Sequence record: ON529860.1
Direction: 5' to 3' (one strand)
Length of the DNA stretch: 64,000 bases
Part shown: positions 51,537-64,000 of the stretch, in pieces
Layout: every line of letters starts with the position of its first letter
Numbering within the stretch: position 1 is the first letter of the stretch
The notes under the pieces: model-generated
Seen by the model: the letters and a program-made list of their open reading frames with translations, nothing else
Database searches by the model: none
What the model was told of the DNA's origin: nothing
Program-made: the position numbers and the translations under genes

Positions 51537-51764
51537 TTAGGCCGCCGCCGCCATTTCCTCCGCGACCGCCGCCGAGATGCGGGCGAAGTCGGCGGCGGTG
51601 GTGTTGGCTTCGAGGTCCGCCATGGAGCGGATTTGACGGCCCGCCATGTTGGCCTTGCGGAAAGCGGCGTTCAGGACGTAGTGGAAACGGGTGGCGAGTT
51701 CACCGGCTTGTTGCGAGGCCAGCATGGTGGCGAGAACTTCGTAGTGCGATTGAACCGTTTTCAT
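51537..51764 (-). CDS. early hypothetical protein
   Basis: Own CtrA-box promoter (51829). Confidence 0.7.
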   Translation of the reverse strand: MKTVQSHYEVLATMLASQQAGELATRFHYVLNAAFRKANMAGRQIRSMADLEANTTAADFARISAAVAEEMAAAA

Positions 51765-51966
51765 TTTCGTCAGTCCCTGTGCGGGGGGCCAATCCCTCCG
51801 TCCATGTGAAGACTATGCCCTGAAAGTCTTAACAAGAAGTTAACGGGCAGAAGAAAATGCGCGCCGCGCGAAGAAAAACGCACGTCGCCGGGAAGGCCGT
51901 TTTTAGCCCCATACAGGGCAGGGGAGGGCTCGCCGCTGTCAGGCGACGGGCGAGCCCCTGAAGCCC

Positions 51967-52212
51967 CTAGCTGGCCGCCCCCTCGGCCTCGCAGCGCAGG
52001 TCGTCGGAGGCTTGCGCCGCGTTCAGGCAATCTTGCGCGCTCATGCCGTAGTCGTCCACATAGGCGTGAACCTCGCCGCCCTCGATCACATATTGAACGA
52101 GGGAGTAGGATTCGGCGGGCGGCTTGGGCAGGGCGAAGCCGTGACCGTCGAAGGCGACAACGGCGAGGGTGGCGACGGCGAACAGGGCGGCGGGCAGGAT
52201 CAGGCGGGGCAT
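51967..52212 (-). CDS. small exported protein
   Basis: N-terminal signal peptide; two Cys. Confidence 0.65.
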   Translation of the reverse strand: MPRLILPAALFAVATLAVVAFDGHGFALPKPPAESYSLVQYVIEGGEVHAYVDDYGMSAQDCLNAAQASDDLRCEAEGAAS

Positions 52213-52236
52213 GGGCGGGATTCCTTTGGGCAGGGG

Positions 52237-52395
52237 TCAGGCGTGAAGGTCGAGGGCGGCGGCGTCCGCCTTCGCCAGCGCGTCCGCCTTGGCGTAGGCG
52301 ACGGCGGCGAGGGTCAGCGTGTCCAGCCGGGCGGCGATCTGGCGGCGGGCGGCGCGGCGCTGGCGGCGTTGCAGGGGGGTCAGGTCGCGGAGCAT
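52237..52395 (-). CDS. hypothetical protein (52 aa)
   Basis: MLRDLTPLQRRQRRAARRQ... Confidence 0.5.
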   Translation of the reverse strand: MLRDLTPLQRRQRRAARRQIAARLDTLTLAAVAYAKADALAKADAAALDLHA

Positions 52396-52447
52396 GGGGG
52401 AAGCCTTGGCAGGAGGGCGGGAGGCGGGCTTGCGCCCGCCCCTTGGG

Positions 52448-52612
52448 TTAGGCCAGAAGGGCGGCGATGCGGGCGGCGGCGCCTTGCGGGCGGGCTTGCT
52501 CGCCGGTCCACTCGGCGCGGACGTGCGCGGGGGCGGGGGCGGCGGCTTCCATGGCGGGCTTGCGCTGGCCGAAGGTGGCGGTGCGGGTCAGGGGCGAGGC
52601 GTTCTTGAACAT
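52448..52612 (-). CDS. hypothetical protein (54 aa)
   Basis: GGAGA SD and CtrA box at 52655. Confidence 0.6.
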   Translation of the reverse strand: MFKNASPLTRTATFGQRKPAMEAAAPAPAHVRAEWTGEQARPQGAAARIAALLA

Positions 52613-52738
52613 GGGTCGTTCTCCGTTGTTGAACCCACTATAGGGGCGCAGAACTTAACAGCAAGTTAAAATCGTCAGGCCCTTGAATCTTTTTTGAGGG
52701 CAGGGCGGGGGAGGCGCTGGGCCTCCCCTTGGGGCGGG

Positions 52739-52903
52739 TCAGCCGCGCGCGCCGCGCAGCCATCCATCCGTCCAGTTCGCGGCGTCCGCCGTGTCGAGGG
52801 GATGCGGGCAGGCGTCGAAGGGCAGGCCCGAATTGTAAGCGTCACGGCCAGCCTTGTAAGCGGAGGTCAGGGGCATGAGAGGCGTTCCCGTCGGCGCTGT
52901 CAT
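52739..52903 (-). CDS. Rmf/CrpP-like small protein (54 aa)
   Basis: AYKAGRDAYNSGLPFDACPH......NWTDGW. Confidence 0.65.
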   Translation of the reverse strand: MTAPTGTPLMPLTSAYKAGRDAYNSGLPFDACPHPLDTADAANWTDGWLRGARG

Positions 52904-53103
52904 GGGGCCAATCCCCTAGCGGCGACATAGGCAGATTAGCCGCCCAACCGTTAACAAGAAGTTAACGCCGCGAAAGTTTTTCAGGGCAGGATGGTTAACG
53001 GATTCAACCCCGGCGTTAACCATAGGGCCAGGCGCGGCGCGCGGGCGCGTTAACCTTAACGCCGCATTAGGGTTAACGGCGGCGTGTGCGCCTAGCCCCG
53101 ACT

Positions 53104-53175
53104 GGCGCGCCGGGCAGGGCGGGCGCGCCGGGCAGGGCGGGCGCGCCGGGCAGGGCGGGCGCGCCGGGCAGGGCG
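53104..53175. repeat. 4 x 18-bp tandem repeat GGCGCGCCGGGCAGGGCG
   Basis: Exact tandem copies. Confidence 0.95.
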
Positions 53176-53179
53176 GGCG

Positions 53180-53380
53180 TCAATGCACCTCGCGGCCTAG
53201 CAGCTTGCCGCGCGGGCCGATTGTGACCTTCTGGGCCGCGCCATACATGGTGACGTTAACAACCGTTTTGTGGCCCGACTGGCGCACGGTCAGGGCCTCG
53301 ACGGCGCCGCCGCCGACGATGCGGCGCAGGGCGTCGCGTTGCGCGGGGTTCAGCTTGGCGATCTCTTGGGCGGTGGTCAT
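53180..53380 (-). CDS. early hypothetical protein
   Basis: GGAGA SD, CtrA box at 53422. Confidence 0.7.
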   Translation of the reverse strand: MTTAQEIAKLNPAQRDALRRIVGGGAVEALTVRQSGHKTVVNVTMYGAAQKVTIGPRGKLLGREVH

Positions 53381-53496
53381 GGCGGCTCTCTCCGTTGATG
53401 CTTCTGTATCGCATCGTTTCCTTAACAACAAGTTAACGGCGGAAAGTTTTTCGCTGGCGCGGGCCGCCCGGCGCGCCGGGCGGCGGGTTCAGCGTA

Positions 53497-53739
53497 TCAG
53501 AACAAATCCAACCCCTTGTGTGAGGGGTCAGCGCCGATCTCGGCGCAATAGCCGCGCCATGCCGGGCTATGGCCGCGATCCCCGTTCAGGGCGTCTTTCA
53601 GGTCATCGTAACGGTCGCAAAGGGTTTGACTACGCAGCGAGTTCAGGCCTTGGGCGCCGCGCGCGACATGGGCGGAAATGCTTTGGCGGGTGCGGTGAAG
53701 GGCCTTGATGATCTTGGCTTCGGACTGGGCGGCGGTCAT
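53497..53739 (-). CDS. early hypothetical protein
   Basis: CtrA box at 53792. Confidence 0.75.
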   Translation of the reverse strand: MTAAQSEAKIIKALHRTRQSISAHVARGAQGLNSLRSQTLCDRYDDLKDALNGDRGHSPAWRGYCAEIGADPSHKGLDLF

Positions 53740-53864
53740 GGCGTTTCTCTTGGGGTTGCCGTTGCTGTCCCTCCCTAATAGCCGCGATTCGTTAACAAGA
53801 GGTTAACAGGTCGAGAATTCTTAGGCGCGCCGGGCGTTAACCTTAACAGGCGCGCCGGGGCCTG

Positions 53865-53894
53865 AAAAACCCCGCCCGGCGCGCCGGGCGGGGT
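53865..53894 (-). terminator. intrinsic terminator
   Basis: ACCCCGCCCGGC-GC-GCCGGGCGGGGT-TTTT. Confidence 0.8.
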
Positions 53895-53900
53895 CTGGCG

Positions 53901-54179
53901 TCAGGCGACCTGACGAATCAGCCGCCGTTCCCGGAACAACCGGTAGGTGAAGAACGCCCGGCCCATGTCCGATTCGGTTTCGCCCGCGAAGTGGTCGGCG
54001 AACGCCAGCGGCATCGACGTATAGTCGGCGCCGTCGTCGCCCGTCCGGGCGATCAGCGAGCCTTCCGCGTCGCAAAGGTAAAGGTCGAAGTCGCGACCGT
54101 CGTTCGGCGCGACCGCCGCGACCAGACGGCAGGCGGCGCAGTCATGAGCGAAGCGGGCGGTTTTGAAGAAAGAGGCCAT
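53901..54179 (-). CDS. early hypothetical protein
   Basis: RFAHDC..C...DLYLC....LIARTGDDG.DY.S; CtrA box at 54232. Confidence 0.75.
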   Translation of the reverse strand: MASFFKTARFAHDCAACRLVAAVAPNDGRDFDLYLCDAEGSLIARTGDDGADYTSMPLAFADHFAGETESDMGRAFFTYRLFRERRLIRQVA

Positions 54180-54296
54180 GGCGTGTCCCTTGGGGTTGCC
54201 GTTGATGTCATCCCCTTATCCCACCCAACCCTTAACAAGAGGTTAACAGCGGAAAGAAAAATCGCCCGCCCGGCGAACCGGGCGGGCGGGGTCGTC

Positions 54297-55208
54297 TTAG
54301 GCGGCGAGGGCGACGTCTAGGGCCTCGCCAGCGGGCTCCGCCTCGCCCGCGTCGGCGCTGGCGTTCAGAATGAACTCGGCGGCGGCTTGGGCCTTCGTGC
54401 AAGCCTGAATGAAGGCCTTGGGGTTGGAGCGGATGCGCTTGGCCCATGCGCCGATATAGGCGGCGTGGTCGTCGCGCTCGACGCTGGCGAAGCCTTGCGA
54501 GGCGCAGACAAACGCCGCTGTCAGTTCCGCGACCAGTTCCTCAAAGGCGTAGGCGTCATCGCCGAACTCGCGGCCAAAGACGCGATTCAGGCGATGCGCC
54601 GCGCCGGTCCAGTGGCCGATCTCATGGAAGGCCGTGGAATAAAAGCCATCGACCGAAACGAAGTCGGCGAAGGCCGGAAGCTGGATGCGATCGACGCTCG
54701 GCGCGTAAAAGGCTTTCGTGCCGCCGTAGCGGATTTCGGCCCCGGTGGCGAGCATGAGGGCGTCAGCGGCGGCGATGCGCTCCAGTTCCGGGCGCGCCGC
54801 GACGGGCTCGCCTTGGGGCAGTTCGATTCCGTCGCACTGGGCGATGTTGAACACGGTGTAAGCCTTGGCGAAGAACGACGCCGTTTCCTCGCCCGTGGCC
54901 TTGTCTTTGCGGGTCGTGCGCGACCAGAAAAAGACCTGCGTTCCCTTCTCGCCCGCCCGGACGGAACCGCCCTTGGCCTTGGCTTGCTTGAACGTCAGCC
55001 AGACGGGTTCGGCATAGCCGCGCGCTTCCTGTTCCATCCACAACCAAAACACGTTGGCCCCGCGATAGGCGCGGCCTTCGATGTTGTGCGGCATGGCGAT
55101 AGCGCCGGGGCGCGAGGTCCAAGGCTTGGCCCAAGGGCGCACGCCCGATTCCAGCTTGCCCGCGATGGTCGCGGCGATCTTGTCGAAAACGTCGTTTGCT
55201 TGGGCCAT
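54297..55208 (-). CDS. ardC: ArdC-like ssDNA-binding antirestriction protein (DUF1738 plus zincin-like domain)
   Basis: PWAKPW, YRGAN, WLTFKQA...GG.VR.GEKG, VFNIAQ, AFY.P..D.I.LP, FHEIGHWTG, YAFEELVAE. Confidence 0.92.
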   Translation of the reverse strand: MAQANDVFDKIAATIAGKLESGVRPWAKPWTSRPGAIAMPHNIEGRAYRGANVFWLWMEQEARGYAEPVWLTFKQAKAKGGSVRAGEKGTQVFFWSRTTRKDKATGEETASFFAKAYTVFNIAQCDGIELPQGEPVAARPELERIAAADALMLATGAEIRYGGTKAFYAPSVDRIQLPAFADFVSVDGFYSTAFHEIGHWTGAAHRLNRVFGREFGDDAYAFEELVAELTAAFVCASQGFASVERDDHAAYIGAWAKRIRSNPKAFIQACTKAQAAAEFILNASADAGEAEPAGEALDVALAA

Positions 55209-55495
55209 GTCAGGCGCTCCCGTTGAGGTGATAGGGCCAAACTACCGTCCAACCCTTAACAAGAAGTTAACGGCAGAAATCTTTTCCGGCAAGCCCTATT
55301 TTAATCTTTTGTTAAGACTTGCGCCCTATGGTGTATCTTGGGGAGGGATCGGCTGGGCCGTTAACCATGTTCGTTAGGGCGGCGTTAACCTTAACGGAAT
55401 CGAAAGCCGCGTTAAGGTTAACGAATCGGGCGGCGGCGTTAACCATGGGCCAGGGCCTCCGAAGGGCGGGCGGGGCCGGAGCCCCGCCGCGCCGG

Positions 55496-55858
55496 TCAGA
55501 ACGGCTTGACGATTCGATAGGCGTCGTTCGCCCGCGCTTGGGCTCCGGCGTAGTCGCAAGCGAGGAAGTTTTCAGCCGCGCGGGCTTGCAGCATGAGCGA
55601 CTCTTGCAGGGGCGTCGCCGGGGCGTTGTCCGGGCGCCCTTCGATCAGCTTGGCGATCACAACCCGAACCATGCCGGTCGCGTCGTTGCGGGTCAGTTGG
55701 CGCGTGTCGCGCATCCACTGAATCGCCTTTTCGTGAACGTCGTGAACCATGGTCAGGCACTCACGGTCAAAGGCCGATGCGCCGCGCGCGGCGGCGGTGA
55801 TGTCGCCCAGCGTTTGCAGCATGAAGCCTAGAGCCCGATTTTTACGTTCGTTCCGCAT
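55496..55858 (-). CDS. early hypothetical protein
   Basis: AAGGA SD, coding-like composition. Confidence 0.7.
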   Translation of the reverse strand: MRNERKNRALGFMLQTLGDITAAARGASAFDRECLTMVHDVHEKAIQWMRDTRQLTRNDATGMVRVVIAKLIEGRPDNAPATPLQESLMLQARAAENFLACDYAGAQARANDAYRIVKPF

Positions 55859-55954
55859 CGCGGTGATTCCTTGGCAGGGGCGGCAACAGCGCCGCCCGTC
55901 TGTTAGAGCACGCGGAACATTCCTTTACAAGAGCGTTCCGCGCTTTTTTTGAGG

Positions 55955-56140
55955 TCAGCGGCGGGCCGGGCGCGACCAGCGGGGTTCAGTCCCGCGCGGC
56001 GGCATCGGAGCCGAATCGTCGTCGTCGTGGTCGCGCCACTTGCGCGAACGGGAGGCTTCGCGGCTGGCGAATCGGTCCTGCTTGTCGAGCGTGTTGCGGG
56101 TGTCGTCGAGGGCGGCGTTACGGCGGAAGGTGCGGGCCAT
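55955..56140 (-). CDS. small charged protein
   Basis: MARTFRR start with GGAG SD. Confidence 0.6.
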   Translation of the reverse strand: MARTFRRNAALDDTRNTLDKQDRFASREASRSRKWRDHDDDDSAPMPPRGTEPRWSRPARR

Positions 56141-56454
56141 GTCTGGACTCCAAGGGTTCGGGCGGCGGCCAATCCGTCGCCCTGTTGACACCCTAGAGGC
56201 CGAGGTCTTAACAAAACGTTAAGAACGGGGCCAGTCGAAAATCTTTCTGCTGTTAATCTTTTGTTAAGACTTCCGCCCTATGCTGTATCTTAGGGAGGGA
56301 TCGGCTGGGCCGTTAACCATGTTCGTTAGGGCGGCGTTAACCTTAACAAAACCTTAAGCCCGTTAACCTGAATCGTTAAGGTTAACGGATTCGCCCGCCG
56401 CGTTAACCATGTTTCCCACGGCACAAAGAGAGGGGGCTGTCAAGCCCCCTCGCC

Positions 56455-56697
56455 TTAATCGTGGCGGAAGATCGTGCGGGGCTTGGCGGCCAGCCGCATG
56501 GCGTGGCGGCGCTCGATTCGCTTGCCCTGATAGAAATAGGTGCAGCGACCGAAACGGCCCTTCGGGCCGCGATGGATGCGCGTGACCAGTTCGCCGCCGT
56601 TCACTTGCGCGACCAGAACGGTCAGGCGAGCGGTGCGGGCCTCGACCAGCGAGGCGGTCAGGGCGTTGCGGGCGTGCAGGGTGCGGGCGGTTTGCAT
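56455..56697 (-). CDS. early hypothetical protein
   Basis: GGAGA SD, CtrA box at 56754. Confidence 0.7.
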   Translation of the reverse strand: MQTARTLHARNALTASLVEARTARLTVLVAQVNGGELVTRIHRGPKGRFGRCTYFYQGKRIERRHAMRLAAKPRTIFRHD

Positions 56698-56822
56698 CGG
56701 GCGTCTCCGTGAGGGCCAATCCCTCTTGACCTGACCAATATGGGGCCAAGAAGTTAACAAGAGGTTAACAGCGCGAGAAAAGTTCGCTGAAAACGACTCG
56801 CAAGTTTTCGGCCCTCGGCGCC

Positions 56823-57150
56823 GGGCGCGGAGGGGGGTGCGGGCCTCGACCGGGCCGGGGCGGCGCTGGAGCCCGGCGGCGACCGGGCGGGCGCGGAGGG
56901 GGGCGCGGGCCTCGACCGGGCCGGGGCGGCGCTGGAGCCGGGCGGGAGGCTTCGCCCCCGTGGGCGGAAACGGCCCGACGTCAAGTTCGCCCGCGTGGGT
57001 GAAAACGGCCCGACGTCAAGTTCGCCCGTGGGCGGAAATGAAGCCGCGTCAAGTCAAGTCCGCAAGCGAAAGCGAAGCGGCGTCAGGTCAAGCCCGAAGG
57101 CGAAAGCGAAGCGGCGTCAGGTCAAGCCCGAAGGCGAAAGCGACGCCGCG
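56823..57150. repeat. non-coding repeat block (iteron-like)
   Basis: ~55-bp GC-rich direct repeat twice, then AAACGGCCCGACGTCAAGTTCGCCCG twice and GCGAAAGCGAAGCGGCGTCAGGTCAAGCCCGAAG twice plus a partial copy. Confidence 0.85.
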
Positions 57151-57155
57151 TCAGG

Positions 57156-57635
57156 TCAGGCGGTCAGCGTCCGCCGATTGACCGAATCGGCGTAGGCCCA
57201 GGCGCGGTTGCGCTCTTCGGCGCGGGCGTAAGCCTCGGCGGCTTCGGCGGCGCATTGCGCCTCGAACGCCTCGCGCGGGAAGTCCCGCTCGATGCGCTCG
57301 CGTTGGGTCTCATGCCACGGGCGCGGGTCATGTTTCGGGGCGGGCGCCGGCGGCGCTTTGCCGTCCAAGGTGACGCGCGCGCCTTTCAGACCGTGCGACC
57401 AGCAGCCGCCGGGGGACAGGTTGTCCAGCAGGGTCTCCGCGCTCATGCCCTCGGGCGCGGTCAGGGCGAGGCCGGTGCGGCGGTGCAGGACGTGGGCCGG
57501 GAACAGGCCCGTCGCCGGGTCCGGCAGGATCAGGGCGTAGGCGGGGGCGTAGCCGTCGGAGTCGGTCGCGCCGTTTTCCAGCAGATAGGCGTTGATGGCG
57601 GGGTTGGCCTTGAGGGCTTTGGCGAGGGTCAACAT
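57156..57635 (-). CDS. early hypothetical protein
   Basis: GGAGA SD, CtrA box at 57681. Confidence 0.7.
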   Translation of the reverse strand: MLTLAKALKANPAINAYLLENGATDSDGYAPAYALILPDPATGLFPAHVLHRRTGLALTAPEGMSAETLLDNLSPGGCWSHGLKGARVTLDGKAPPAPAPKHDPRPWHETQRERIERDFPREAFEAQCAAEAAEAYARAEERNRAWAYADSVNRRTLTA

Positions 57636-57771
57636 GACGGGCGTCTCCGGTTTCGATCCTGCTACTCTAGCGGACAAAAGTTAACAAGAGGTTAACGCCG
57701 TGGCGATTTTTCAGGCGCGCTCGCGGCGAACGGGCGTTAACCTTAACGGCCGTTTACAAAGCCAGGCCCGC

Positions 57772-58101
57772 CTAGTGCGCGTGGAAGTCCACGCGCCCGG
57801 CGGGCGAGACGTCGAAGTCCCAGACGTTGAAGCGGGCGGCCTCGGCGGCCTCGGCCTCTTCAGCCGCGCGGGCGGCGGCATAGGCCTCGCCTTCGGCCTT
57901 GTGGGCCGCTTCGGCCTCGGCCAGTTCCGCGCACTCGCGGGCGTAGGCCTCGGGGCAGCCGTAGCCCGTGGGGCGGTTGGGGCGCGCGTCGAGCCACGCC
58001 TGCGCGGCGGCGACCGTGACGCCCGCCATGACCGGGCGGACGCCGTAGTCGTTGCGGTGCAGGGCGTAGTAGAGGTCGAGGGTTTCCTGATCGGCGGTCA
58101 T
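57772..58101 (-). CDS. early hypothetical protein
   Basis: GGAGA SD, CtrA box at 58155. Confidence 0.7.
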   Translation of the reverse strand: MTADQETLDLYYALHRNDYGVRPVMAGVTVAAAQAWLDARPNRPTGYGCPEAYARECAELAEAEAAHKAEGEAYAAARAAEEAEAAEAARFNVWDFDVSPAGRVDFHAH

Positions 58102-58179
58102 CACGTCTCTCCGGCGGGCCAGTCCCGCCACGTCCTCACCCTAGCGGACAGGTGTTAACAAGAGGTTAACACCCGCGAG

Positions 58180-58248
58180 AAAATCGGGCAGGGTCCCCGG
58201 TCGAAAAATCAGGCAGGGTCCCCGGTCGAAAAATCAGGCAGGGTCCCC
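58180..58248. repeat. ~2.8 x 25-bp tandem repeat AAAATCAGGCAGGGTCCCCGGTCGA
   Basis: 25-bp period. Confidence 0.9.
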
Positions 58249-58276
58249 ATTAACCTTAACGGGCGGGGCGCTCTCG

Positions 58277-58510
58277 TCACTGGCGCGTGTGCCAGTGACG
58301 CGCCAGTCGGGAGGTTCGCGGGTTTGTCCCGTCACTATCCCATTGCCCCGCCGCGACCCAGCCGATGGCGTCGCGCGCGTTGCGGGGATTGTGCTCGGCA
58401 CCAGAGTCCAAGTCTAGCAGAACCGCGCCATGTGCTCGAACGTCGTCTGGATAACGGGCCTCTATGGCGTTGGCGAGGCGAACCGCTAAGACGTTGCTGC
58501 GTCGGATCAT
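58277..58510 (-). CDS. early hypothetical protein
   Basis: Follows the ArfA-like gene. Confidence 0.65.
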   Translation of the reverse strand: MIRRSNVLAVRLANAIEARYPDDVRAHGAVLLDLDSGAEHNPRNARDAIGWVAAGQWDSDGTNPRTSRLARHWHTRQ

Positions 58511-58511
58511 G

Positions 58512-58625
58512 TCAGCGCCCTTTCCGGGAGTAGGAGCCTTTGCCCTTGCGGGCCTTGACCACGCGGACCCGGTAAGCGGGGGTGGCGAGGGCGGCGGCGG
58601 CGGGGTTGCGTTTCGGGGCGGCCAT
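58512..58625 (-). CDS. ArfA-like ribosome-rescue peptide (37 aa)
   Basis: MAAPKRNPAAAALATPAYRVRVVKARKGKGSYSRKGR (ArfA core P.FR.RV...KGKGSY.RK); GGAGA SD; CtrA box at 58668. Confidence 0.75.
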   Translation of the reverse strand: MAAPKRNPAAAALATPAYRVRVVKARKGKGSYSRKGR

Positions 58626-58678
58626 GGGTGTCTCCGTGGTTGATAGAGACACCCTAGCCGACAGAAGTTAACAAGAGG

Positions 58679-59125
58679 TTAAGCGTCTGGATATTGCGCC
58701 TGAAGCTTCGCCAGCGTGGCCCGGTCCTCGGCTTCGGCGGCGCGGCGGGCCTCGTCGCGGCGCTTTGCGGCGGCGGTGCGCTTGGCGTCGCGGGCGGCGG
58801 TTTCAGGGGCCAACCACGCCGGGTCCGCGCCCTCGGCGACCGGGGCCAGGTAGGACAGGGGGAAGGACACCTCGGCCCAGTCCTGATAGCCGTAGCTTCC
58901 CGAAACGTAGAATTTGACGTCCACGGTTTCAGGCTTGTCGCCGCGCGCCTCGTCCAGTTCCCAGCTTTCGAGATAGCCATAGACGACAGTGTCCAGACGT
59001 TGGTCCTTGGGCTTCACAGGCTCATCCAGCCGGAAGATGTAAAGCGCGCGGGCCAAGTGCTCCAGCGCCTCGTTCAGGGCGTCGCGCTCGGTCACAAAAG
59101 CCTTGAGACGGTCAGGGGTCAGCAT
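58679..59125 (-). CDS. early hypothetical protein
   Basis: GGAGA SD. Confidence 0.75.
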   Translation of the reverse strand: MLTPDRLKAFVTERDALNEALEHLARALYIFRLDEPVKPKDQRLDTVVYGYLESWELDEARGDKPETVDVKFYVSGSYGYQDWAEVSFPLSYLAPVAEGADPAWLAPETAARDAKRTAAAKRRDEARRAAEAEDRATLAKLQAQYPDA

Positions 59126-59140
59126 GGGCGGTTCTCCGGT

Positions 59141-59614
59141 TCAGGTCGCGGCGGTTTCGGTCAGGGCGGCGCGCAGGGCTTGGGTGACGGGGCGGATCGT
59201 CAGGGGATAGGCTTTCGAGACGTCCCAGTGGCGTTGCATCAGGGCTTCGGCCTCGTCCAGAGTCTCGGCGGTCCCCTCCTTCAGCTTGACCCAGCCGGGG
59301 GCGATTGACGACACGTCCTCGATCACGACATAGGGCGCGGGCAGACGCACAACCTCAAACCGCAAGGCCGGGTTTTCCGCCACGCCGCACGACTTGACGA
59401 CTTTGAAGTGCGACTCATCCACGACGCGCAAGGCAAAGCGCGCCTGATAGGTGTCGGCGTCTTTCTTTTCGACGAAAAGGCCCAGTCCGTTGTTGCGCTC
59501 CCACTCGGCCAGCTTCTTGGTGAAGCGGGCGGGCGGCTTCGGCGCGCCGTCCGTGAAACGGATCGTGGCGCCGTAGGGGGCCAGCGCGTGCAGTTCGGTG
59601 GCGGTCAGAAACAT
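59141..59614 (-). CDS. early hypothetical protein
   Basis: GGAGAG SD, CtrA box at 59659. Confidence 0.75.
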   Translation of the reverse strand: MFLTATELHALAPYGATIRFTDGAPKPPARFTKKLAEWERNNGLGLFVEKKDADTYQARFALRVVDESHFKVVKSCGVAENPALRFEVVRLPAPYVVIEDVSSIAPGWVKLKEGTAETLDEAEALMQRHWDVSKAYPLTIRPVTQALRAALTETAAT

Positions 59615-59753
59615 GGGGGCTCTCCCGTAGATGATGCGTCGGTTCTAGCACCGATTCGTTAACAGGAGGTTAACGGGCCGGGCGGGACTGGCGGGCGTTA
59701 ACCTTAACGGCGGGCAGGCAGGATCAGGCCCGCCGAGGAGGCGGGCCGTCGCC

Positions 59754-60266
59754 TTAAACCGTGATGGCGTCGCGGGCCTTGGTCAGTTCCTCGATCAGCA
59801 CATCAAGGCGGCGCACCGCCTCTTCGCCGCTGTCACAGTCTTCCTTGGCGTCCAGTTCCACCATGACGGCGGTGAAGATGGTGTCGCCCCCGTCCGTCGC
59901 ATCGGCCAGGGTTTCCATCCACGCGTAATCCGCCTCGCCGTAGGCGTTGGCGAACTCGCGTTGCCACGGCGACAGGGGCGTGTCGGGCAGGGTGACGCCC
60001 AGCGTATGCGGCATCAGGTTGGTGGCGACTTTCAGGATTTGGAATGACCCCGCCATGCCGTCGTCATAGGCGCATTGCAGTTCCTTGGCGATCTGGCGGG
60101 CGAGGGCGTCGCCGGTCGCCGCGCCTTGATCGTCGCCCAGCACGGCCTCGTCGTCGCCAAGGTCTCGGGTCAGCAGCACGATGGCCTGATATTGATGGTC
60201 ATGGTGGGCGCGGCAGTGCTCCACCACGTCGGCGCGCGGCAGGATGAAAGGGGTAAGGTCGGTCAT
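59754..60266 (-). CDS. early acidic hypothetical protein
   Basis: GGAGAG SD, CtrA box at 60309. Confidence 0.75.
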   Translation of the reverse strand: MTDLTPFILPRADVVEHCRAHHDHQYQAIVLLTRDLGDDEAVLGDDQGAATGDALARQIAKELQCAYDDGMAGSFQILKVATNLMPHTLGVTLPDTPLSPWQREFANAYGEADYAWMETLADATDGGDTIFTAVMVELDAKEDCDSGEEAVRRLDVLIEELTKARDAITV

Positions 60267-60378
60267 GGGCTCTCCCGTCGATGATGCGTCGGTTCTAGCA
60301 CCGATTCGTTAACAAGAGGTTAACGCGCCGGGCGGGGCGGCGGGCGTTAACCTTAACGGAAGGTGAAGGGTCGGCGCG

Positions 60379-60708
60379 TCAGGGGAGGCGCGCCGGGTTC
60401 AGTGACAGACTGACGCGGCGGGCCTTGGACGGCTTGCCGGTCAGGATTCGCTTGTCGGTCTTGGCCCCGCAGCAGGTGCAGACGGCCCGACCGAGATCGA
60501 ACCGGACCGAGGCCAGGGGGTCGGCGGTGCCGTTCACGGTCAGTTTGAGCGCCACGTCTGACAGCTTGGGGTGATGGCCCTGTCTGCCCCGGCGGCGCTC
60601 GACGTGGGCGCTCATGCCCGCCGCGTTGCGGTTGCCCCGGCGGACCACAGTCCCGGCGACCTTGTAGAGGCCGCCGGAAAAGGTGTTGTCGATGGCGTAG
60701 CGCCGCAT
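60379..60708 (-). CDS. early hypothetical protein
   Basis: TGATG coupling; CTCC near the C-terminus. Confidence 0.65.
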   Translation of the reverse strand: MRRYAIDNTFSGGLYKVAGTVVRRGNRNAAGMSAHVERRRGRQGHHPKLSDVALKLTVNGTADPLASVRFDLGRAVCTCCGAKTDKRILTGKPSKARRVSLSLNPARLP

Positions 60709-60881
60709 CAGGCGTTCACGTCAAAGCGGCCAACGCGGTTCCCATTGACGTCGCGCACGGCGCCCATGTCGGCCCCGTTCTCGATCTTGTCGGCGAGGTC
60801 GCGCAGGATGCGGGCGAGTTCGCCGGGCTTGGCGTCGTCGTCAAAAGCGGCGTTGCCGGTGTCGATTTCCAGTTTGAACAT
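60708..60881 (-). CDS. conserved small phage protein (57 aa)
   Basis: MFKLEIDTGNAAFDD...ELARILRDLADKIE....G.VRDVNGNRVG; CtrA box at 60924. Confidence 0.75.
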   Translation of the reverse strand: MFKLEIDTGNAAFDDDAKPGELARILRDLADKIENGADMGAVRDVNGNRVGRFDVNA

Positions 60882-61067
60882 GGTCTGTCTCCGTTTCGAT
60901 CCTTAGACCATAGCCGACAAAAGTTAACAATAGGTTAAGGGCTTCGCGGCCTGTTGCGAGGGGTTGGCGTTAACCTTAACGGGGCGGGGCAAAAGAGGGA
61001 CGGCGGCCATCCCGGCGCCGTCCAGTTTACCGCGATCAGCGTTCGCGGCGACGCGTTCGGTTGCCGC

Positions 61068-61367
61068 CTAGAGGGCCGTCAGGGCGTGCCACAGGGCGTT
61101 AGGGACCACGCCGCCCGCCGCGACCGGATCGAAGGCGGTTTCCCCGCCCTCGGGGCCGTAGTGGGGCATGACGCAGCCGGGCAGGGCGTCGATCATGCGG
61201 ATGCGGTAGAGCGGAACGTCTGCGAAAGGGGGGTTCTCAACCCGGCCCAGGACCTCGGCGCGACCTTCGCCGCCATTGAGGTAGCCCGGCGCATAGGTCA
61301 CGATCTGGCCCGGCGCAAAGGCGGTGTTTTCCGGGGTGCGGATAGGGGCGACGGCGATGCGGGTCAT
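61068..61367 (-). CDS. early hypothetical protein (SH3-like)
   Basis: FAPGQIV.Y......G.AEV. Confidence 0.65.
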   Translation of the reverse strand: MTRIAVAPIRTPENTAFAPGQIVTYAPGYLNGGEGRAEVLGRVENPPFADVPLYRIRMIDALPGCVMPHYGPEGGETAFDPVAAGGVVPNALWHALTAL

Positions 61368-61368
61368 G

Positions 61369-61548
61369 TCAGGCTCCAGCGGACAGAAGAACGGCGGTCG
61401 AAAGGTGTTGCGTCGCCTGCTTGCGCAGGGCGGCGGTGAGGAGGCGGGCGGCTTCCTTGGCGTTCCCGGCCAGCGCCGCCGCTTCGGCGCGCTTGGCGAA
61501 AAAGGCCTTGGACTTGCGGGCGCGCCGGGCGCGTTGGTAGTCGGTCAT
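61369..61548 (-). CDS. basic helical protein (59 aa)
   Basis: GGAG SD, CtrA box at 61593. Confidence 0.6.
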   Translation of the reverse strand: MTDYQRARRARKSKAFFAKRAEAAALAGNAKEAARLLTAALRKQATQHLSTAVLLSAGA

Positions 61549-61678
61549 CGGGCTTGCTCCCTTGTGATGCCTCTAGTCCTACAGGACAGAAGTTAACAAG
61601 AGGTTAACGCCGCGACCTTTTCGACCGCCGGGCGGCGCGGGCGGCGTTAACCTTAACGCCGGGCGGCGGCGGGGCGGC

Positions 61679-61894
61679 CTAGCGGCGGCCAGCCCCTTGG
61701 GTCTTTTGGGCCAGGCGCCGCTCGCGCCCGGCGGTCCAGCCCCGGCGGTAGGCGTCGCCGATCTGGCGACGGTCCACGCCCGCCGCCCACGACATCCGGT
61801 TGTCGCGGCGCCCGTATTCCAGCCCGGACTCGGCGTCGATGACGCCGCCGTGATATTGCGCCATCAGGGCGCGTTCCGTGACCGGGAGCCCCAT
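61679..61894 (-). CDS. early hypothetical protein
   Basis: QY..G..DA...; AYRRGW pattern. Confidence 0.65.
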   Translation of the reverse strand: MGLPVTERALMAQYHGGVIDAESGLEYGRRDNRMSWAAGVDRRQIGDAYRRGWTAGRERRLAQKTQGAGRR

Positions 61895-62118
61895 CAGTGA
61901 ACCCCGCCCAGCCGGGCGGCGCGCTGGTCGTCGTTTTCCATATAGAAGTGACCGTCGATGCGGTAGATGCGTTTTCCGGCGTCATAGGGGCGCAGGCCCC
62001 CGAACGCGACTTGGAAGGTGGCGGGGGCGTCGCCCACGTAGAGGGTCGCGCCGTCCGGCTTGACGCAGACGGCGGCCCCCTCGCGGACCTGAACGGTTCC
62101 GATCAGGCGGCGGGCCAT
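61894..62118 (-). CDS. early hypothetical protein
   Basis: Coupled to both neighbours. Confidence 0.65.
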   Translation of the reverse strand: MARRLIGTVQVREGAAVCVKPDGATLYVGDAPATFQVAFGGLRPYDAGKRIYRIDGHFYMENDDQRAARLGGVH

Positions 62119-62417
62119 CAGGCGGCGGCCTTCTTGGCGGCGGGCTTATAGCCCTCGACGCGGCCTTCCAGCAGGGCGGACCCGTCCAGCGGACCCTCGA
62201 ACGAGTCCACGTCGTCCATGGCCGCCATCGTCACGGCGCGGAAGGCCTTTTTGCGGACGACGGAATTCACCGCCCCGTCGTTGGCGCGGCTGACGGCGCG
62301 GTAGCAGGCTTCGGGGTGAGATTGAGCGCGGACGGTCTGCTTATAGACGCCCATGTCGTCGCCCATCCAGAACAGGACGACGAACTCTTGGCGTTCGGGG
62401 CGGATCGGGTGTTGCAT
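62118..62417 (-). CDS. early hypothetical protein
   Basis: MQHPIRP start; CtrA box at 62469. Confidence 0.65.
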   Translation of the reverse strand: MQHPIRPERQEFVVLFWMGDDMGVYKQTVRAQSHPEACYRAVSRANDGAVNSVVRKKAFRAVTMAAMDDVDSFEGPLDGSALLEGRVEGYKPAAKKAAA

Positions 62418-62568
62418 CGCGGGTGGTCCCTTGCGGTGGTTTGTTCCCTTATACATAGGGGACAGAAGTTAACAAGAGGTTAAGACGCGAAAGTTTTTTG
62501 GGCGGGGCAGGCGGGCGTTAACCTTAACGACGGGTTAATGGATCAGCGGCCCCGAAGGGCCGCCCCTG

Positions 62569-62988
62569 TCAGGCCGCGACCGGCTGGCGCAACAGGGTCC
62601 ACAGGCGGTCCATCGCCTTGTTGACGACGTGGGGCGACCCGACGCCGAACGGCGTGACGTTGACCACGTCGGCGGACTTCCAGACATAGGCCCGGATCGT
62701 CGCGACGCGGGGTCCGTGCGGCGGCTGTTCGGTGGTGACGAACAGGGTCACGCCCAAGCCGTGGAAGTCGTAGAAGCCGCCGGGGAACTTCGTGCCGAAG
62801 CCCTTCATGGCGCCTTTGTCGAACCAATGGCCGCGACGGCGGCGGTCGTAATCGCGCTCGATGTTGGCGAGGCAATTGCTCGATCCCTCGAAGGCCGGGC
62901 CTTCGTGCGGCGCGGGGGCGGCGGCGGCCAGCAAGCCCGGCAGGGCGGCGGCGGCGGCGAGGGCGATGCGTTCGGCTTGGGTGGTCAT
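62569..62988 (-). CDS. early hypothetical protein
   Basis: GHWFDKGAMKGFGTK motif; GGAGA SD; CtrA box at 63030. Confidence 0.75.
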   Translation of the reverse strand: MTTQAERIALAAAAALPGLLAAAAPAPHEGPAFEGSSNCLANIERDYDRRRRGHWFDKGAMKGFGTKFPGGFYDFHGLGVTLFVTTEQPPHGPRVATIRAYVWKSADVVNVTPFGVGSPHVVNKAMDRLWTLLRQPVAA

Positions 62989-63135
62989 GGTCGTCTCCGG
63001 TTTGATAGGTCCAACCTACAGGGGAGAAGTTAACAAAGCGTTAACGGCCGTCAAGGCCTTTCTGGCCGCGCGTTAAGGTTAACGGCGGGCGGGCGACAGG
63101 GATGCGCCCCGGCGCGAGGCCGGGGCGATCCTGGG

Positions 63136-63456
63136 TCAGCCGATCAGGCGCGTCTTGAGCGTCGCCCGGCCTTCCGGCGTCAGCTTGGCGCGTTGGGCGC
63201 GGAGGAAGTCAAGCCCCTTTTGATAGGAGTCGATCCTGCCGCCGTATTGGCGCTCCAACCACTTCAACGGCTCCGGGTAATGCGAGGCGTAGAAGGCCAC
63301 GCGACCCGGCCTGATGCGGGGGAACAGCTTGGCGCGGGCCTCTTTGATCGAGGTCGCGCCGGGGACGGGCAGTTCCGCGACCACGCGCCCCTTGCGGAGG
63401 ATATGGGCCGTGTTCAGTTCCGGCGCGTAGGCGTGGCGTTCGAGGATCAGTTTCAT
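63136..63456 (-). CDS. early hypothetical protein
   Basis: GGAGA SD; CtrA box at 63499. Confidence 0.75.
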   Translation of the reverse strand: MKLILERHAYAPELNTAHILRKGRVVAELPVPGATSIKEARAKLFPRIRPGRVAFYASHYPEPLKWLERQYGGRIDSYQKGLDFLRAQRAKLTPEGRATLKTRLIG

Positions 63457-63509
63457 CGGTCGTCTCCGTTTCGATCCTTAGACCATAGGCGACAGAAGTT
63501 AACAAGAGG

Positions 63510-64000
63510 TTAAGAGGTGAAGTTTTCCAGATAGCGGCGGCGCATCCCCGCAACCGTCGTCGGCGTGACCCGGACAATGTCGGCGTTTTTGCGCATCATG
63601 TCCGCCCGCATGAACGACGTCGTCGCCAATTGCAGGGTGTGATTCACGCAGGAATGATAGCCGTCTTTCAGGCGTTCAATCGGCCACGTCGCCGGATGCA
63701 GCTTGGCGCGTTCCAAGGTCTCCAACGGGATAGGCACGGCGAGGTCGTCGCGATGCTGATCGGACTCCGTCCGCTCATAGGTCGCGCCGCGCGGATAGAC
63801 GCCCAAGATCAAATCCCCGTTGTTCAGCCGGAACCACGTCAGGCCGGAACGCCCGTCGTCGTCAACCGCTTGCGCCAGCACGTAGCGGGCCACGGCGGCG
63901 TCCGCCGGGACGGCCCACGCCACAACCGAATCGAGCATATTGCCGTCTTCGTCATGGGCGAAGATCGCGGACGGGGGGCCAGGTTCCTCCACGACGCCGG
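63510..64000 (-). CDS. hypothetical protein, truncated by the window edge
   Basis: Open to the end of the window. Confidence 0.65.
   Translation of the reverse strand, partial: GVVEEPGPPSAIFAHDEDGNMLDSVVAWAVPADAAVARYVLAQAVDDDGRSGLTWFRLNNGDLILGVYPRGATYERTESDQHRDDLAVPIPLETLERAKLHPATWPIERLKDGYHSCVNHTLQLATTSFMRADMMRKNADIVRVTPTTVAGMRRRYLENFTS

Follow-up and report, generated by a model that had tools for sequence, protein, structure and literature searches.

The use of the host's cell-cycle regulator CtrA by phage promoters has already been described and tested for phiCbK, and the phiCbK-like phages as a group concentrate their predicted CtrA sites in the terminal repeats (PMC9437464). Purified phosphorylated CtrA (CtrA~P) shifts probes of the phiCbK gp005 and gp018 promoters in electrophoretic mobility shift assays, and mutation of the box abolishes the shift (Mascolo et al. 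2022, PMC9437464). The gp005 and gp018 lacZ fusions show activity in uninfected C. crescentus, and this activity drops by factors of 29 and 5, respectively, in ctrA-ts (PMC9437464). Because these promoters work in a CtrA-dependent manner in uninfected cells, they require no phage protein. Most host CtrA-activated promoters contain one near-consensus box at -35 (PMC11264516). We identified an extreme new example of this principle in the giant Brevundimonas phage vB_BpoS-Papperlapapp, an array of small genes served by 48 nearly identical promoters with a TTAA-N7-TTAA box at the -35 position. The stretch analyzed here (the window, 64,000 nucleotides) is 100% identical to bases 1-64000 of the Papperlapapp record (ON529860.1; 356,874 bp, deposited circular). 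Papperlapapp belongs to the subfamily Dolichocephalovirinae, is a relative of phiCbK with a similar elongated-head siphovirus virion, and infects B. pondensis LVF1 (Caulobacteraceae). Its own description paper makes no mention of CtrA or terminal repeats.

The initial annotation of the window reported at least 23 of these sites in one interval and none elsewhere. There are exactly 23, all at 51829-63513, compared with 0.04 on average, and never more than 1, in dinucleotide shuffles of the window. The array continues past the window edge to 88780. Genome-wide there are 68 perfect sites, of which 67 fall at 51829-88780 and one at 247640. The array (51.5-88.8 kb) occupies 37 of 357 kb, about 10% of the genome, and this strongly skewed distribution is typical of the phiCbK-like phages termed LPEG phages. 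TTAA tetramers are similarly concentrated, with 83 of the 99 in the window lying beyond 51.5 kb and densities of 6.3 per kb within the array versus 0.27 per kb outside, where the tetramer occurs at about a third of the frequency expected from base composition. Within positions 1-51500 of the window it is strongly avoided (16 copies in 51.5 kb). Avoidance outside the array may be the result of selection, directed either at stray CtrA half-sites or at a restriction site that contains TTAA, such as GTTAAC.

Perfect boxes are fewer in the other genomes examined. There are three per terminal-repeat copy in phiCbK and 12 in CcrColossus, while Kikimora (10 in 313 kb) and Gurke (14) have boxes of another type. 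The 3.2-Mb chromosome of B. albigilva, from the same genus as the host, has only five, one of them an exact match to the 15-mer discussed below, so that the array exceeds this whole chromosome in perfect boxes by a factor of more than ten. Papperlapapp is the largest and cleanest instance among the phages compared, with its near-identical activator-type promoters preceding unrelated genes.

The 48 promoter-type sites, which include 19 of the 23 in the window, form a single stereotyped minus-strand unit that we designate the class A promoter. On the coding strand the box reads cgTTAAC(C/T)T(C/G)TTGTTAA(C/G). It had been stated that most window sites read TTAACCTCTTGTTAAC; this was overstated, as the exact 15-mer accounts for 10 of the 23 and the exact 16-mer for nine, but the looser pattern TTAAC-N4-TGTTAA on the coding (minus) strand does fit 19. 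The remaining four differ: those at 55301 and 56253 are plus-strand promoters, and those at 56343 and 62524 are made from a second element, class B, described below. An A-rich tract is found at -16 to -8 relative to the class A box, and the T four bases past the second TTAA is 92% conserved. Considered as two 11-bp units, the box and its flank have a conserved T at position 8 of both (88% and 92%), as would fit a tandem dimer of an OmpR-family protein. The conserved spacer and these T residues sharpen the picture of an optimal CtrA-dependent promoter.

The -10 element is gCTAg or CTAT. In 31 of the 48 promoters its TA lies 11 nt past the box, and in most others the distance is 12-13 nt (11-13 nt in 46 of 48). 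Between the -10 and the start codon is a conserved leader, ATCAAC..GGAGA. The initial annotation had described CTAG or CTAT about 8-10 nt beyond the box and a GGAGA Shine-Dalgarno sequence; the CTA-type -10 follows about 10-12 nt after the box. The end of the box is 41-74 nt (median 45) from the annotated start codon. None of the 48 boxes lies inside an annotated coding sequence (at eight of them the overlap is limited to the upstream gene's stop codon), and the preference for intergenic, promoter positions reported for LPEG phages is seen here as well. It had been claimed that each gene is wired to its own site, which is too strong: a separate box precedes 48 of the 68 array genes, and the remaining 20 follow other genes within small operons. 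A weight matrix derived from the class A promoters was scanned over both strands of the 357-kb genome, a check suggested at the time of the initial annotation. It added three plus-strand copies (55299, 56251 and 86609) and gave no other match, on either strand, beyond the 51-87 kb region.

As at CtrA-activated promoters, the box is located at -35 with fixed spacing to the -10 and no separate -35 hexamer, positions being reckoned from the -10. No TTGACA-like hexamer was found 16-18 nt from the -10 of the class A promoters. At 16-17 nt upstream of the -10 the hexamer reads ACCTCT or CCTCTT, and TTGTTA is just 11 nt away. Since the former does not resemble a -35 and the latter is too close, the class A promoters have no usable -35 element, and the CtrA dyad stands in its place. 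One could instead suppose that these are ordinary promoters of host sigma, with TTGTTAAC as a variant -35, no role for CtrA and a TTAA dyad that is there by chance, given that the second half-site follows a TTG in all 48 promoters (a set selected on it) and also in phiCbK and Colossus. However, the 11-nt spacing of TTGTTA compares poorly with that of the genuine TTGACA of Kikimora, the invariant upstream half-site is left unexplained, and at the phiCbK counterparts CtrA no longer binds once the box is mutated. We give this explanation almost no credence.

Kikimora, which infects the same host strain, shows what a CtrA-independent version of the Papperlapapp cassette would look like. It has a homologous 35-kb array with approximately 44 promoters consisting of TTTTCTGnAAAAAGnGG-TTGACAC, 16 nt, and CCTAGAAG, followed by the Papperlapapp-type leader and ribosome-binding site. 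The consensus TTGACA sits 16-17 nt from the -10. Counterparts of 33 Papperlapapp array proteins are found in Kikimora. Among the 28 orthologues that have a box in Papperlapapp, 24 are preceded by TTGAC(A/G) in Kikimora and three by any TTAA-N7-TTAA, and the promoter type has therefore been exchanged array-wide between sister lineages. Kikimora and Gurke resemble Papperlapapp in their orthologous genes, leaders, ribosome-binding sites, class B elements and the position of the array between terminase and portal. However, they have a consensus TTGACA -35 and no CtrA dyad at the promoter.

The design of the class A promoter is identical to that of the phiCbK gp005, gp018 and gp020 promoters, which consist of TTAACGGTTTGTTAAC or TTAACCTCTTGTTAAC followed 10-12 nt on by CCAGGGT, CTAGGGT or CTATGGT. 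These three genes are preceded by the three perfect boxes of the phiCbK terminal repeat, and the gp020 box is the exact 16-mer. The CtrA protein of B. subvibrioides is reported to be essential and 87% identical to that of C. crescentus. Within the Papperlapapp genome there is no OmpR/CtrA-type winged helix (Trans_reg_C). Because the tested phiCbK promoters share this design, host promoters are alike, and the phage has no OmpR-type domain, we infer with considerable confidence that CtrA activates the Papperlapapp promoters. The initial annotation had recognized a CtrA-consensus box in the geometry of CtrA-activated promoters. That architecture is present, and binding, activation and timing by CtrA in Papperlapapp would follow by analogy with phiCbK. 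Overall, the array is quite probably a set of about 48 short units with CtrA-dependent promoters, located in the position of the phiCbK terminal repeat.

In the mechanism we propose, a near-perfect CtrA box (cgTTAACCTCTTGTTAAC) at roughly -38 to -23 would replace the -35 hexamer. It would be followed by the host-type -10 (gCTAg/CTAT) 10-12 nt past the box and a leader estimated at about 25 nt with the GGAGA ribosome-binding site. Host RNA polymerase with the housekeeping sigma factor would be unable to use the class A promoters alone, and a CtrA~P dimer on the two 11-bp repeats would recruit the polymerase, as at CtrA-activated promoters of the host and at those of phiCbK gp005 and gp018. In this way, expression of the approximately 68 mostly orphan genes would depend on the infected cell's CtrA~P state.

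Several observations weigh against CtrA-dependent activation. The spacer of the box is conserved far beyond the published TTAA-N7-TTAA requirement, and it may be read by sigma or by a second factor, or may serve as the U-rich tail of an overlapping hairpin. A 324-aa open reading frame (ORF) with sigma-70 region 4-like stretches (E 7.5e-7) is found at 116135-116536 on the plus strand. It is possibly a phage sigma factor for later genes, and a sigma-like or GcrA-like phage protein could act on the class A promoters. In addition, CtrA sites repress rather than activate in the Brevundimonas phage Delta.

The first two points would be accommodated if the boxes were read by a phage factor that mimics CtrA specificity, either a virion-borne or early DNA-binding protein or a sigma-like protein such as the region-4-like ORF at 116.1-116.5 kb might encode. 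Conservation extends beyond the CtrA consensus in the flanks as well as the spacer, and the Brevundimonas chromosome lacks the class B 12-mer, so that this element at least looks phage-specific. However, such a factor would have to do without an OmpR-type winged helix encoded in the genome, and phiCbK promoters of identical design work in a CtrA-dependent way in uninfected cells. The exact 16-mer is also single-copy in many alphaproteobacterial chromosomes, with a GC content of at least 55% at 72 of the first 120 matching loci. We therefore consider a phage factor very unlikely. The exact 15-mer is present in Brevundimonas chromosomes, where the flanking ORFs have no informative Pfam match, and a scan of IMG/VR for the 16-mer returned nine stretches with one match each and no arrays. 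A search of public reads yielded low-depth contigs, all from virome and wastewater runs.

The third point raises the alternative that CtrA represses these promoters, as at DELTA_120 of vB_BsubS-Delta, and that the genes fire only when CtrA is cleared at the swarmer-to-stalked transition. Repression has been shown for this other Brevundimonas phage, and the class A box does overlap the zone contacted by RNA polymerase. However, the class A promoters offer no alternative -35 hexamer for CtrA-free initiation, and their architecture is like that of the activated phiCbK promoters and unlike the multi-site gap region of Delta. This makes repression very improbable indeed.

The cassettes had been described as often closed by a terminator. 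By eye and with a crude hairpin-plus-T scan, which is noisy, a clear GC hairpin with a T run is present in about 5-7 of the 23 window gaps. However, a consensus scan gave 12 compared with 14.8 in shuffles, so terminators are not enriched. Pairing between the flanks of class B (..GTTAACGCC) and class A (GGCGTTAACC..) was examined as a terminator in which the box spacer would form the U-tail. The segments upstream of the boxes fold at -14.7 kcal/mol versus -7.7 kcal/mol for mononucleotide shuffles; the structures are heterogeneous, and about half end at the box. An Rfam search (evalue mode) of 51-64 kb found nothing close to any gathering score.

The genomic position of the array bears on when it would be expressed. 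In the direction of transcription, the order in Papperlapapp is RNaseH, TerS, TerL, array, peptidase and portal, and in phiCbK it is RNaseH-like, TerS, TerL, terminal repeat (with the genome end), small genes and portal. The phiCbK repeat starts inside TerL, and the CcrColossus repeat, of about 16.7 kb, starts just past TerL (PMC3556154). All 12 CcrColossus boxes are inside this repeat and have the same extended consensus. By synteny, the array of Papperlapapp appears to occupy the terminal-repeat region. This synteny with phiCbK is likewise the one basis on which the array might be called early or first-injected, as it was in the initial annotation. Mascolo et al. propose a 'lytic deferment' in which the activated promoters wait until the predivisional stage (PMC9437464). 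This timing is the opposite of the immediate expression in swarmer cells that had been assumed for the array. Papperlapapp and Kikimora, as a pair on one host, provide a natural experiment for the deferment hypothesis.

The second element, class B, is a TTAA-N2-TTAA doublet with the extended consensus cGTTAAGGTTAACGcc and cores TTAAGGTTAA or TTAACCTTAA. There are 53 copies in the genome, of which 51 are in the array (GTTAAGGTTAACG) and 14 in the window. Class B (GTTAAGGTTAAC) explains the TTAA-N7-TTAA matches that are not promoters, including those at 56343 and 62524. Where room allows, it is found at 31 of the 48 promoters, mostly 19-52 nt upstream of the box and in either orientation. Since its distance is variable and it is missing at tight gene junctions, class B probably lies outside the core promoter. 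Kikimora has the element at the same frequency, and two copies are present in the phiCbK terminal repeat; the 12-mer was not found in the 3.2-Mb Brevundimonas chromosome. Class B may be an accessory CtrA site or the site of another protein, and the upstream pilA sites that delay expression (PMC11264516) are a possible analogue.

A subclass of the class A promoters includes a GANTC site. The initial annotation correctly noted that the boxes at 53792, 59659 and 60309 abut CGATTCG. Genome-wide, GANTC is found at +16 to +20, directly past the box, in 14 of the 48 promoters, which thus carry this site within the promoter as GcrA/CcrM-sensitive promoters do. The chance of this is about 0.003 per position, but the 14 promoters may share descent. 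Their sequence is mostly TTAACGAATC followed by GCTAGAAC a few bases on. A GcrA-like ORF (PF07750, E 2e-11) is present at 202913-203128 of the genome on the minus strand, and phiCbK has one too. No CcrM-like methylase (N6_N4_Mtase domain) was found in Papperlapapp.

The density of sites had also suggested that the array titrates CtrA. A swarmer cell contains about 9,000 CtrA molecules according to Spencer 2009, as cited in PMC8640480. A single incoming genome, with approximately 134 perfect half-sites, is quantitatively unlikely to titrate a pool of this size, whereas a replicating pool of about 100 genome copies could. The array might be mainly a CtrA sink that shifts the host cell cycle, for example by freeing the origin or blocking division, with the small genes secondary. 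The presence of 67 perfect boxes and 51 class B cores in the array is consistent with a sink, as are the five perfect boxes of an entire Brevundimonas chromosome, the roughly 3-fold depletion of TTAA outside the array (0.27 per kb) and the GcrA-like gene, a hint that the host cell cycle matters to the phage. However, a sink needs on the order of 100 genome copies and thus could act only late in infection, and the strict position, strand and -10 spacing of the 48 boxes are what a promoter needs and not a sponge. A primary role as a sink is therefore distinctly unlikely. Sink and promoter roles are not mutually exclusive, and a combination has a small chance of being right. CtrA gating would then be a switchable array-wide trait, with the approximately 48 boxes kept or homogenised. 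After replication the boxes together with class B would act as a CtrA sink, and the host would be held in a CtrA-low, replication-permissive state.

Two divergent modules on the plus strand, at 55285-55500 and 56237-56460, are 93% identical over 108 nt. Each has a class A-type box (TTAATCTTTTGTTAAG) with CCTATGGTG 10 nt on, is directed away from the adjacent gene promoter, and faces a gene-free tract holding TTAACCAT and class B elements. The module, including the invariant GGGGAGGGAT and GGCCGTTAACCAT, is kept upstream of ardC in Kikimora and Gurke, whose gene promoters are of the TTGACA type. The module has no conserved ORF. Its product may be a small RNA, or else a transcript with a regulatory or insulator role. 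The coding sequence annotated at 55312-55446 on the opposite strand is probably spurious. A further dense cluster of class B and TTAAC sequences is found at 86.9-88.8 kb of the genome, between the last array promoter and TerL, partly with 32-bp spacing (87174, 87206 and 87238). Two plus-strand genes are located near this cluster, one of which (86672-86917) follows a class A box on the plus strand at 86611. Synteny places the cluster near the genome terminus, and it may be a packaging or replication site.

Papperlapapp shares with the LPEG phages (PMC9437464) its subfamily, the position of the array between TerL and portal, the box, the -10 spacing, the small orphan genes and the skewed intergenic sites. 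It differs in scale, as its 37-kb array carries 48 promoter boxes and has 67 perfect sites, far more than the phiCbK and CcrColossus repeats, and in infecting Brevundimonas. Papperlapapp itself was outside the study of Mascolo et al. Class B and the GANTC subclass are not described there. New here are the scale, the array-wide exchange of promoters with Kikimora and Gurke, class B, the GANTC subclass and the divergent modules. Compared with C. crescentus promoters such as pilA site 1 (PMC11264516), there is the same TTAA-N7-TTAA over the -35, with accessory upstream sites at some. However, the phage boxes are perfect and near-identical, whereas host sites are mostly off-consensus, and the phage accessory element is a TTAA-N2-TTAA doublet in place of host N6/N7 sites. 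The phi29-family use of Spo0A and the LexA-controlled phages (reviewed in PMC9437464) are similar in that phage promoters read a host master regulator for timing. In those cases the regulator represses a few key promoters, in contrast to an activator site in approximately 48 promoters here.

The first-step-transfer region of T5 is another likeness, as it has small host-takeover genes in or next to a long terminal repeat, a position that the Papperlapapp array would share by synteny only. The T5 pre-early promoters are not known to be activator-gated. Additionally, phiCbK-like phages have their A1 homologue in the replication module (PMC3556154).

The genes behind the promoters are diverse. No blastp match at E below 1e-4 exists among the 71 array proteins, and because they show no mutual similarity, only the promoter is repeated and not the genes. 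Duplication of cassettes as the source of the repeats was ruled out by this lack of paralogy. The promoter and leader at 59617-59686 and 60267-60336 are 96% identical over 70 nt, with unrelated genes downstream. The likeness of these two promoters (59659 and 60309) suggests that promoters were homogenised, through recombination or gene conversion, and not that genes were duplicated.

Pfam names four of the 28 window genes scanned, and PHROGs had no match for ten larger orphan proteins. The gene at 54297-55208 (minus strand), annotated in the record as 'DNA primase TraC', encodes an ArdC-type protein with an ArdcN domain (E 1e-36) and a zincin MPTase-PolyVal domain (E 2e-42), a pair that marks a predicted anti-restriction or anti-defence function. 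The gene at 58512-58625 (minus strand) encodes a 37-aa ArfA-like alternative ribosome-rescue peptide (38.1 bits against a cut-off of 25.5), and the gene at 52739-52876 (minus strand) a 45-aa RMF-like peptide whose 25.1 bits fall under the Pfam cut-off of 27.9. Both of these, which resemble host translation factors, are behind CtrA-box promoters. The fourth is the DUF7447 protein encoded at 62569-62988. The 54-aa product of 52448-52612 (minus strand), annotated 'integrase', has no Pfam match at E 0.01, and the label is probably an annotation artefact. ArdC, the ArfA-like and RMF-like peptides and about 60 orphans are candidates for host takeover. The features of the window are collected in Table 1.

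Table 1. Promoters, boxes and class B elements of the Papperlapapp array within the window.
Feature	Position	Strand	Basis or remark
Window part of array	51537..64000	-	29 annotated small genes, 37-303 aa, all minus strand; array continues to 88.8 kb
Class A promoter for gene 51537-51764	51829..51843	-	box scan, gene distance
Class A promoter for operon 52448-52612, 52237-52395, 51967-52212	52655..52669	-	box scan, gene distance
Class A promoter for RMF-like 45-aa gene 52739-52876	52951..52965	-	box scan, Pfam
Class A promoter for gene 53180-53380	53422..53436	-	box scan
Class A promoter for gene 53497-53739, GANTC directly past box	53792..53806	-	box scan
Class A promoter for gene 53901-54179	54232..54246	-	box scan
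Class A promoter for ArdC-like putative anti-restriction gene 54297-55208	55256..55270	-	box scan, Pfam
Class A-type box, divergent promoter into gene-free TTAAC-rich tract (~55340-55490)	55301..55315	+	weight matrix
Class A promoter for gene 55955-56140	56208..56222	-	box scan
Second copy of divergent class A-type module, 93% identical over 108 nt to 55301 copy	56253..56267	+	weight matrix
TTAA-N7-TTAA formed of class B elements, not a gene-proximal promoter	56343..56357	.	box scan
Class A promoter for gene 56455-56697	56754..56768	-	box scan
Class A promoter for gene 57156-57635	57681..57695	-	box scan
Class A promoter for gene 57772-58101	58155..58169	-	box scan
Class A promoter for ArfA-like 37-aa gene 58512-58625, box overlapping stop codon of upstream gene	58668..58682	-	box scan, Pfam
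Class A promoter with GANTC for genes 59141-59614, 58679-59125	59659..59673	-	box scan
Class A promoter with GANTC for gene 59754-60266	60309..60323	-	box scan
Class A promoter for genes 60708-60881, 60379-60708	60924..60938	-	box scan
Class A promoter for genes 61369-61548, 61068-61367	61593..61607	-	box scan
Class A promoter for operon 62118-62417, 61894-62118, 61679-61894	62469..62483	-	box scan
TTAA-N7-TTAA of TTAAC half-site and class B element, upstream of 62469 promoter	62524..62538	.	box scan
Class A promoter for DUF7447 gene 62569-62988	63030..63044	-	box scan, Pfam
Class A promoter for gene 63136-63456, box overlapping stop codon of gene 63510-64151	63499..63513	-	box scan
Class B cores 1-7 of 14	starts 53050, 53837, 55385, 55412, 56337, 56376, 57737	.	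span 53050..63082
Class B cores 8-14 of 14	starts 58250, 59698, 60347, 60970, 61647, 62518, 63073	.	span 53050..63082

Several other features of the array were observed. A 387-nt intergenic region at 56822-57167 contains tandem repeats of 66 nt (two copies), 35 nt (three copies) and 34 nt (four copies). The repeat units contain CTTGAC on the coding strand, and a similar tract is found at the orthologous place in Kikimora. Beyond the window, 796 nt of the array (genome 69431-70226) are without an annotated gene and include a weak class A-like match on the plus strand at 69535. Finally, a GC-rich 18-nt tandem repeat, GGCGCGCCGGGCAGGGCG, of about four perfect units is present at 53104-53175, directly past the stop codon of the gene at 53180-53380.

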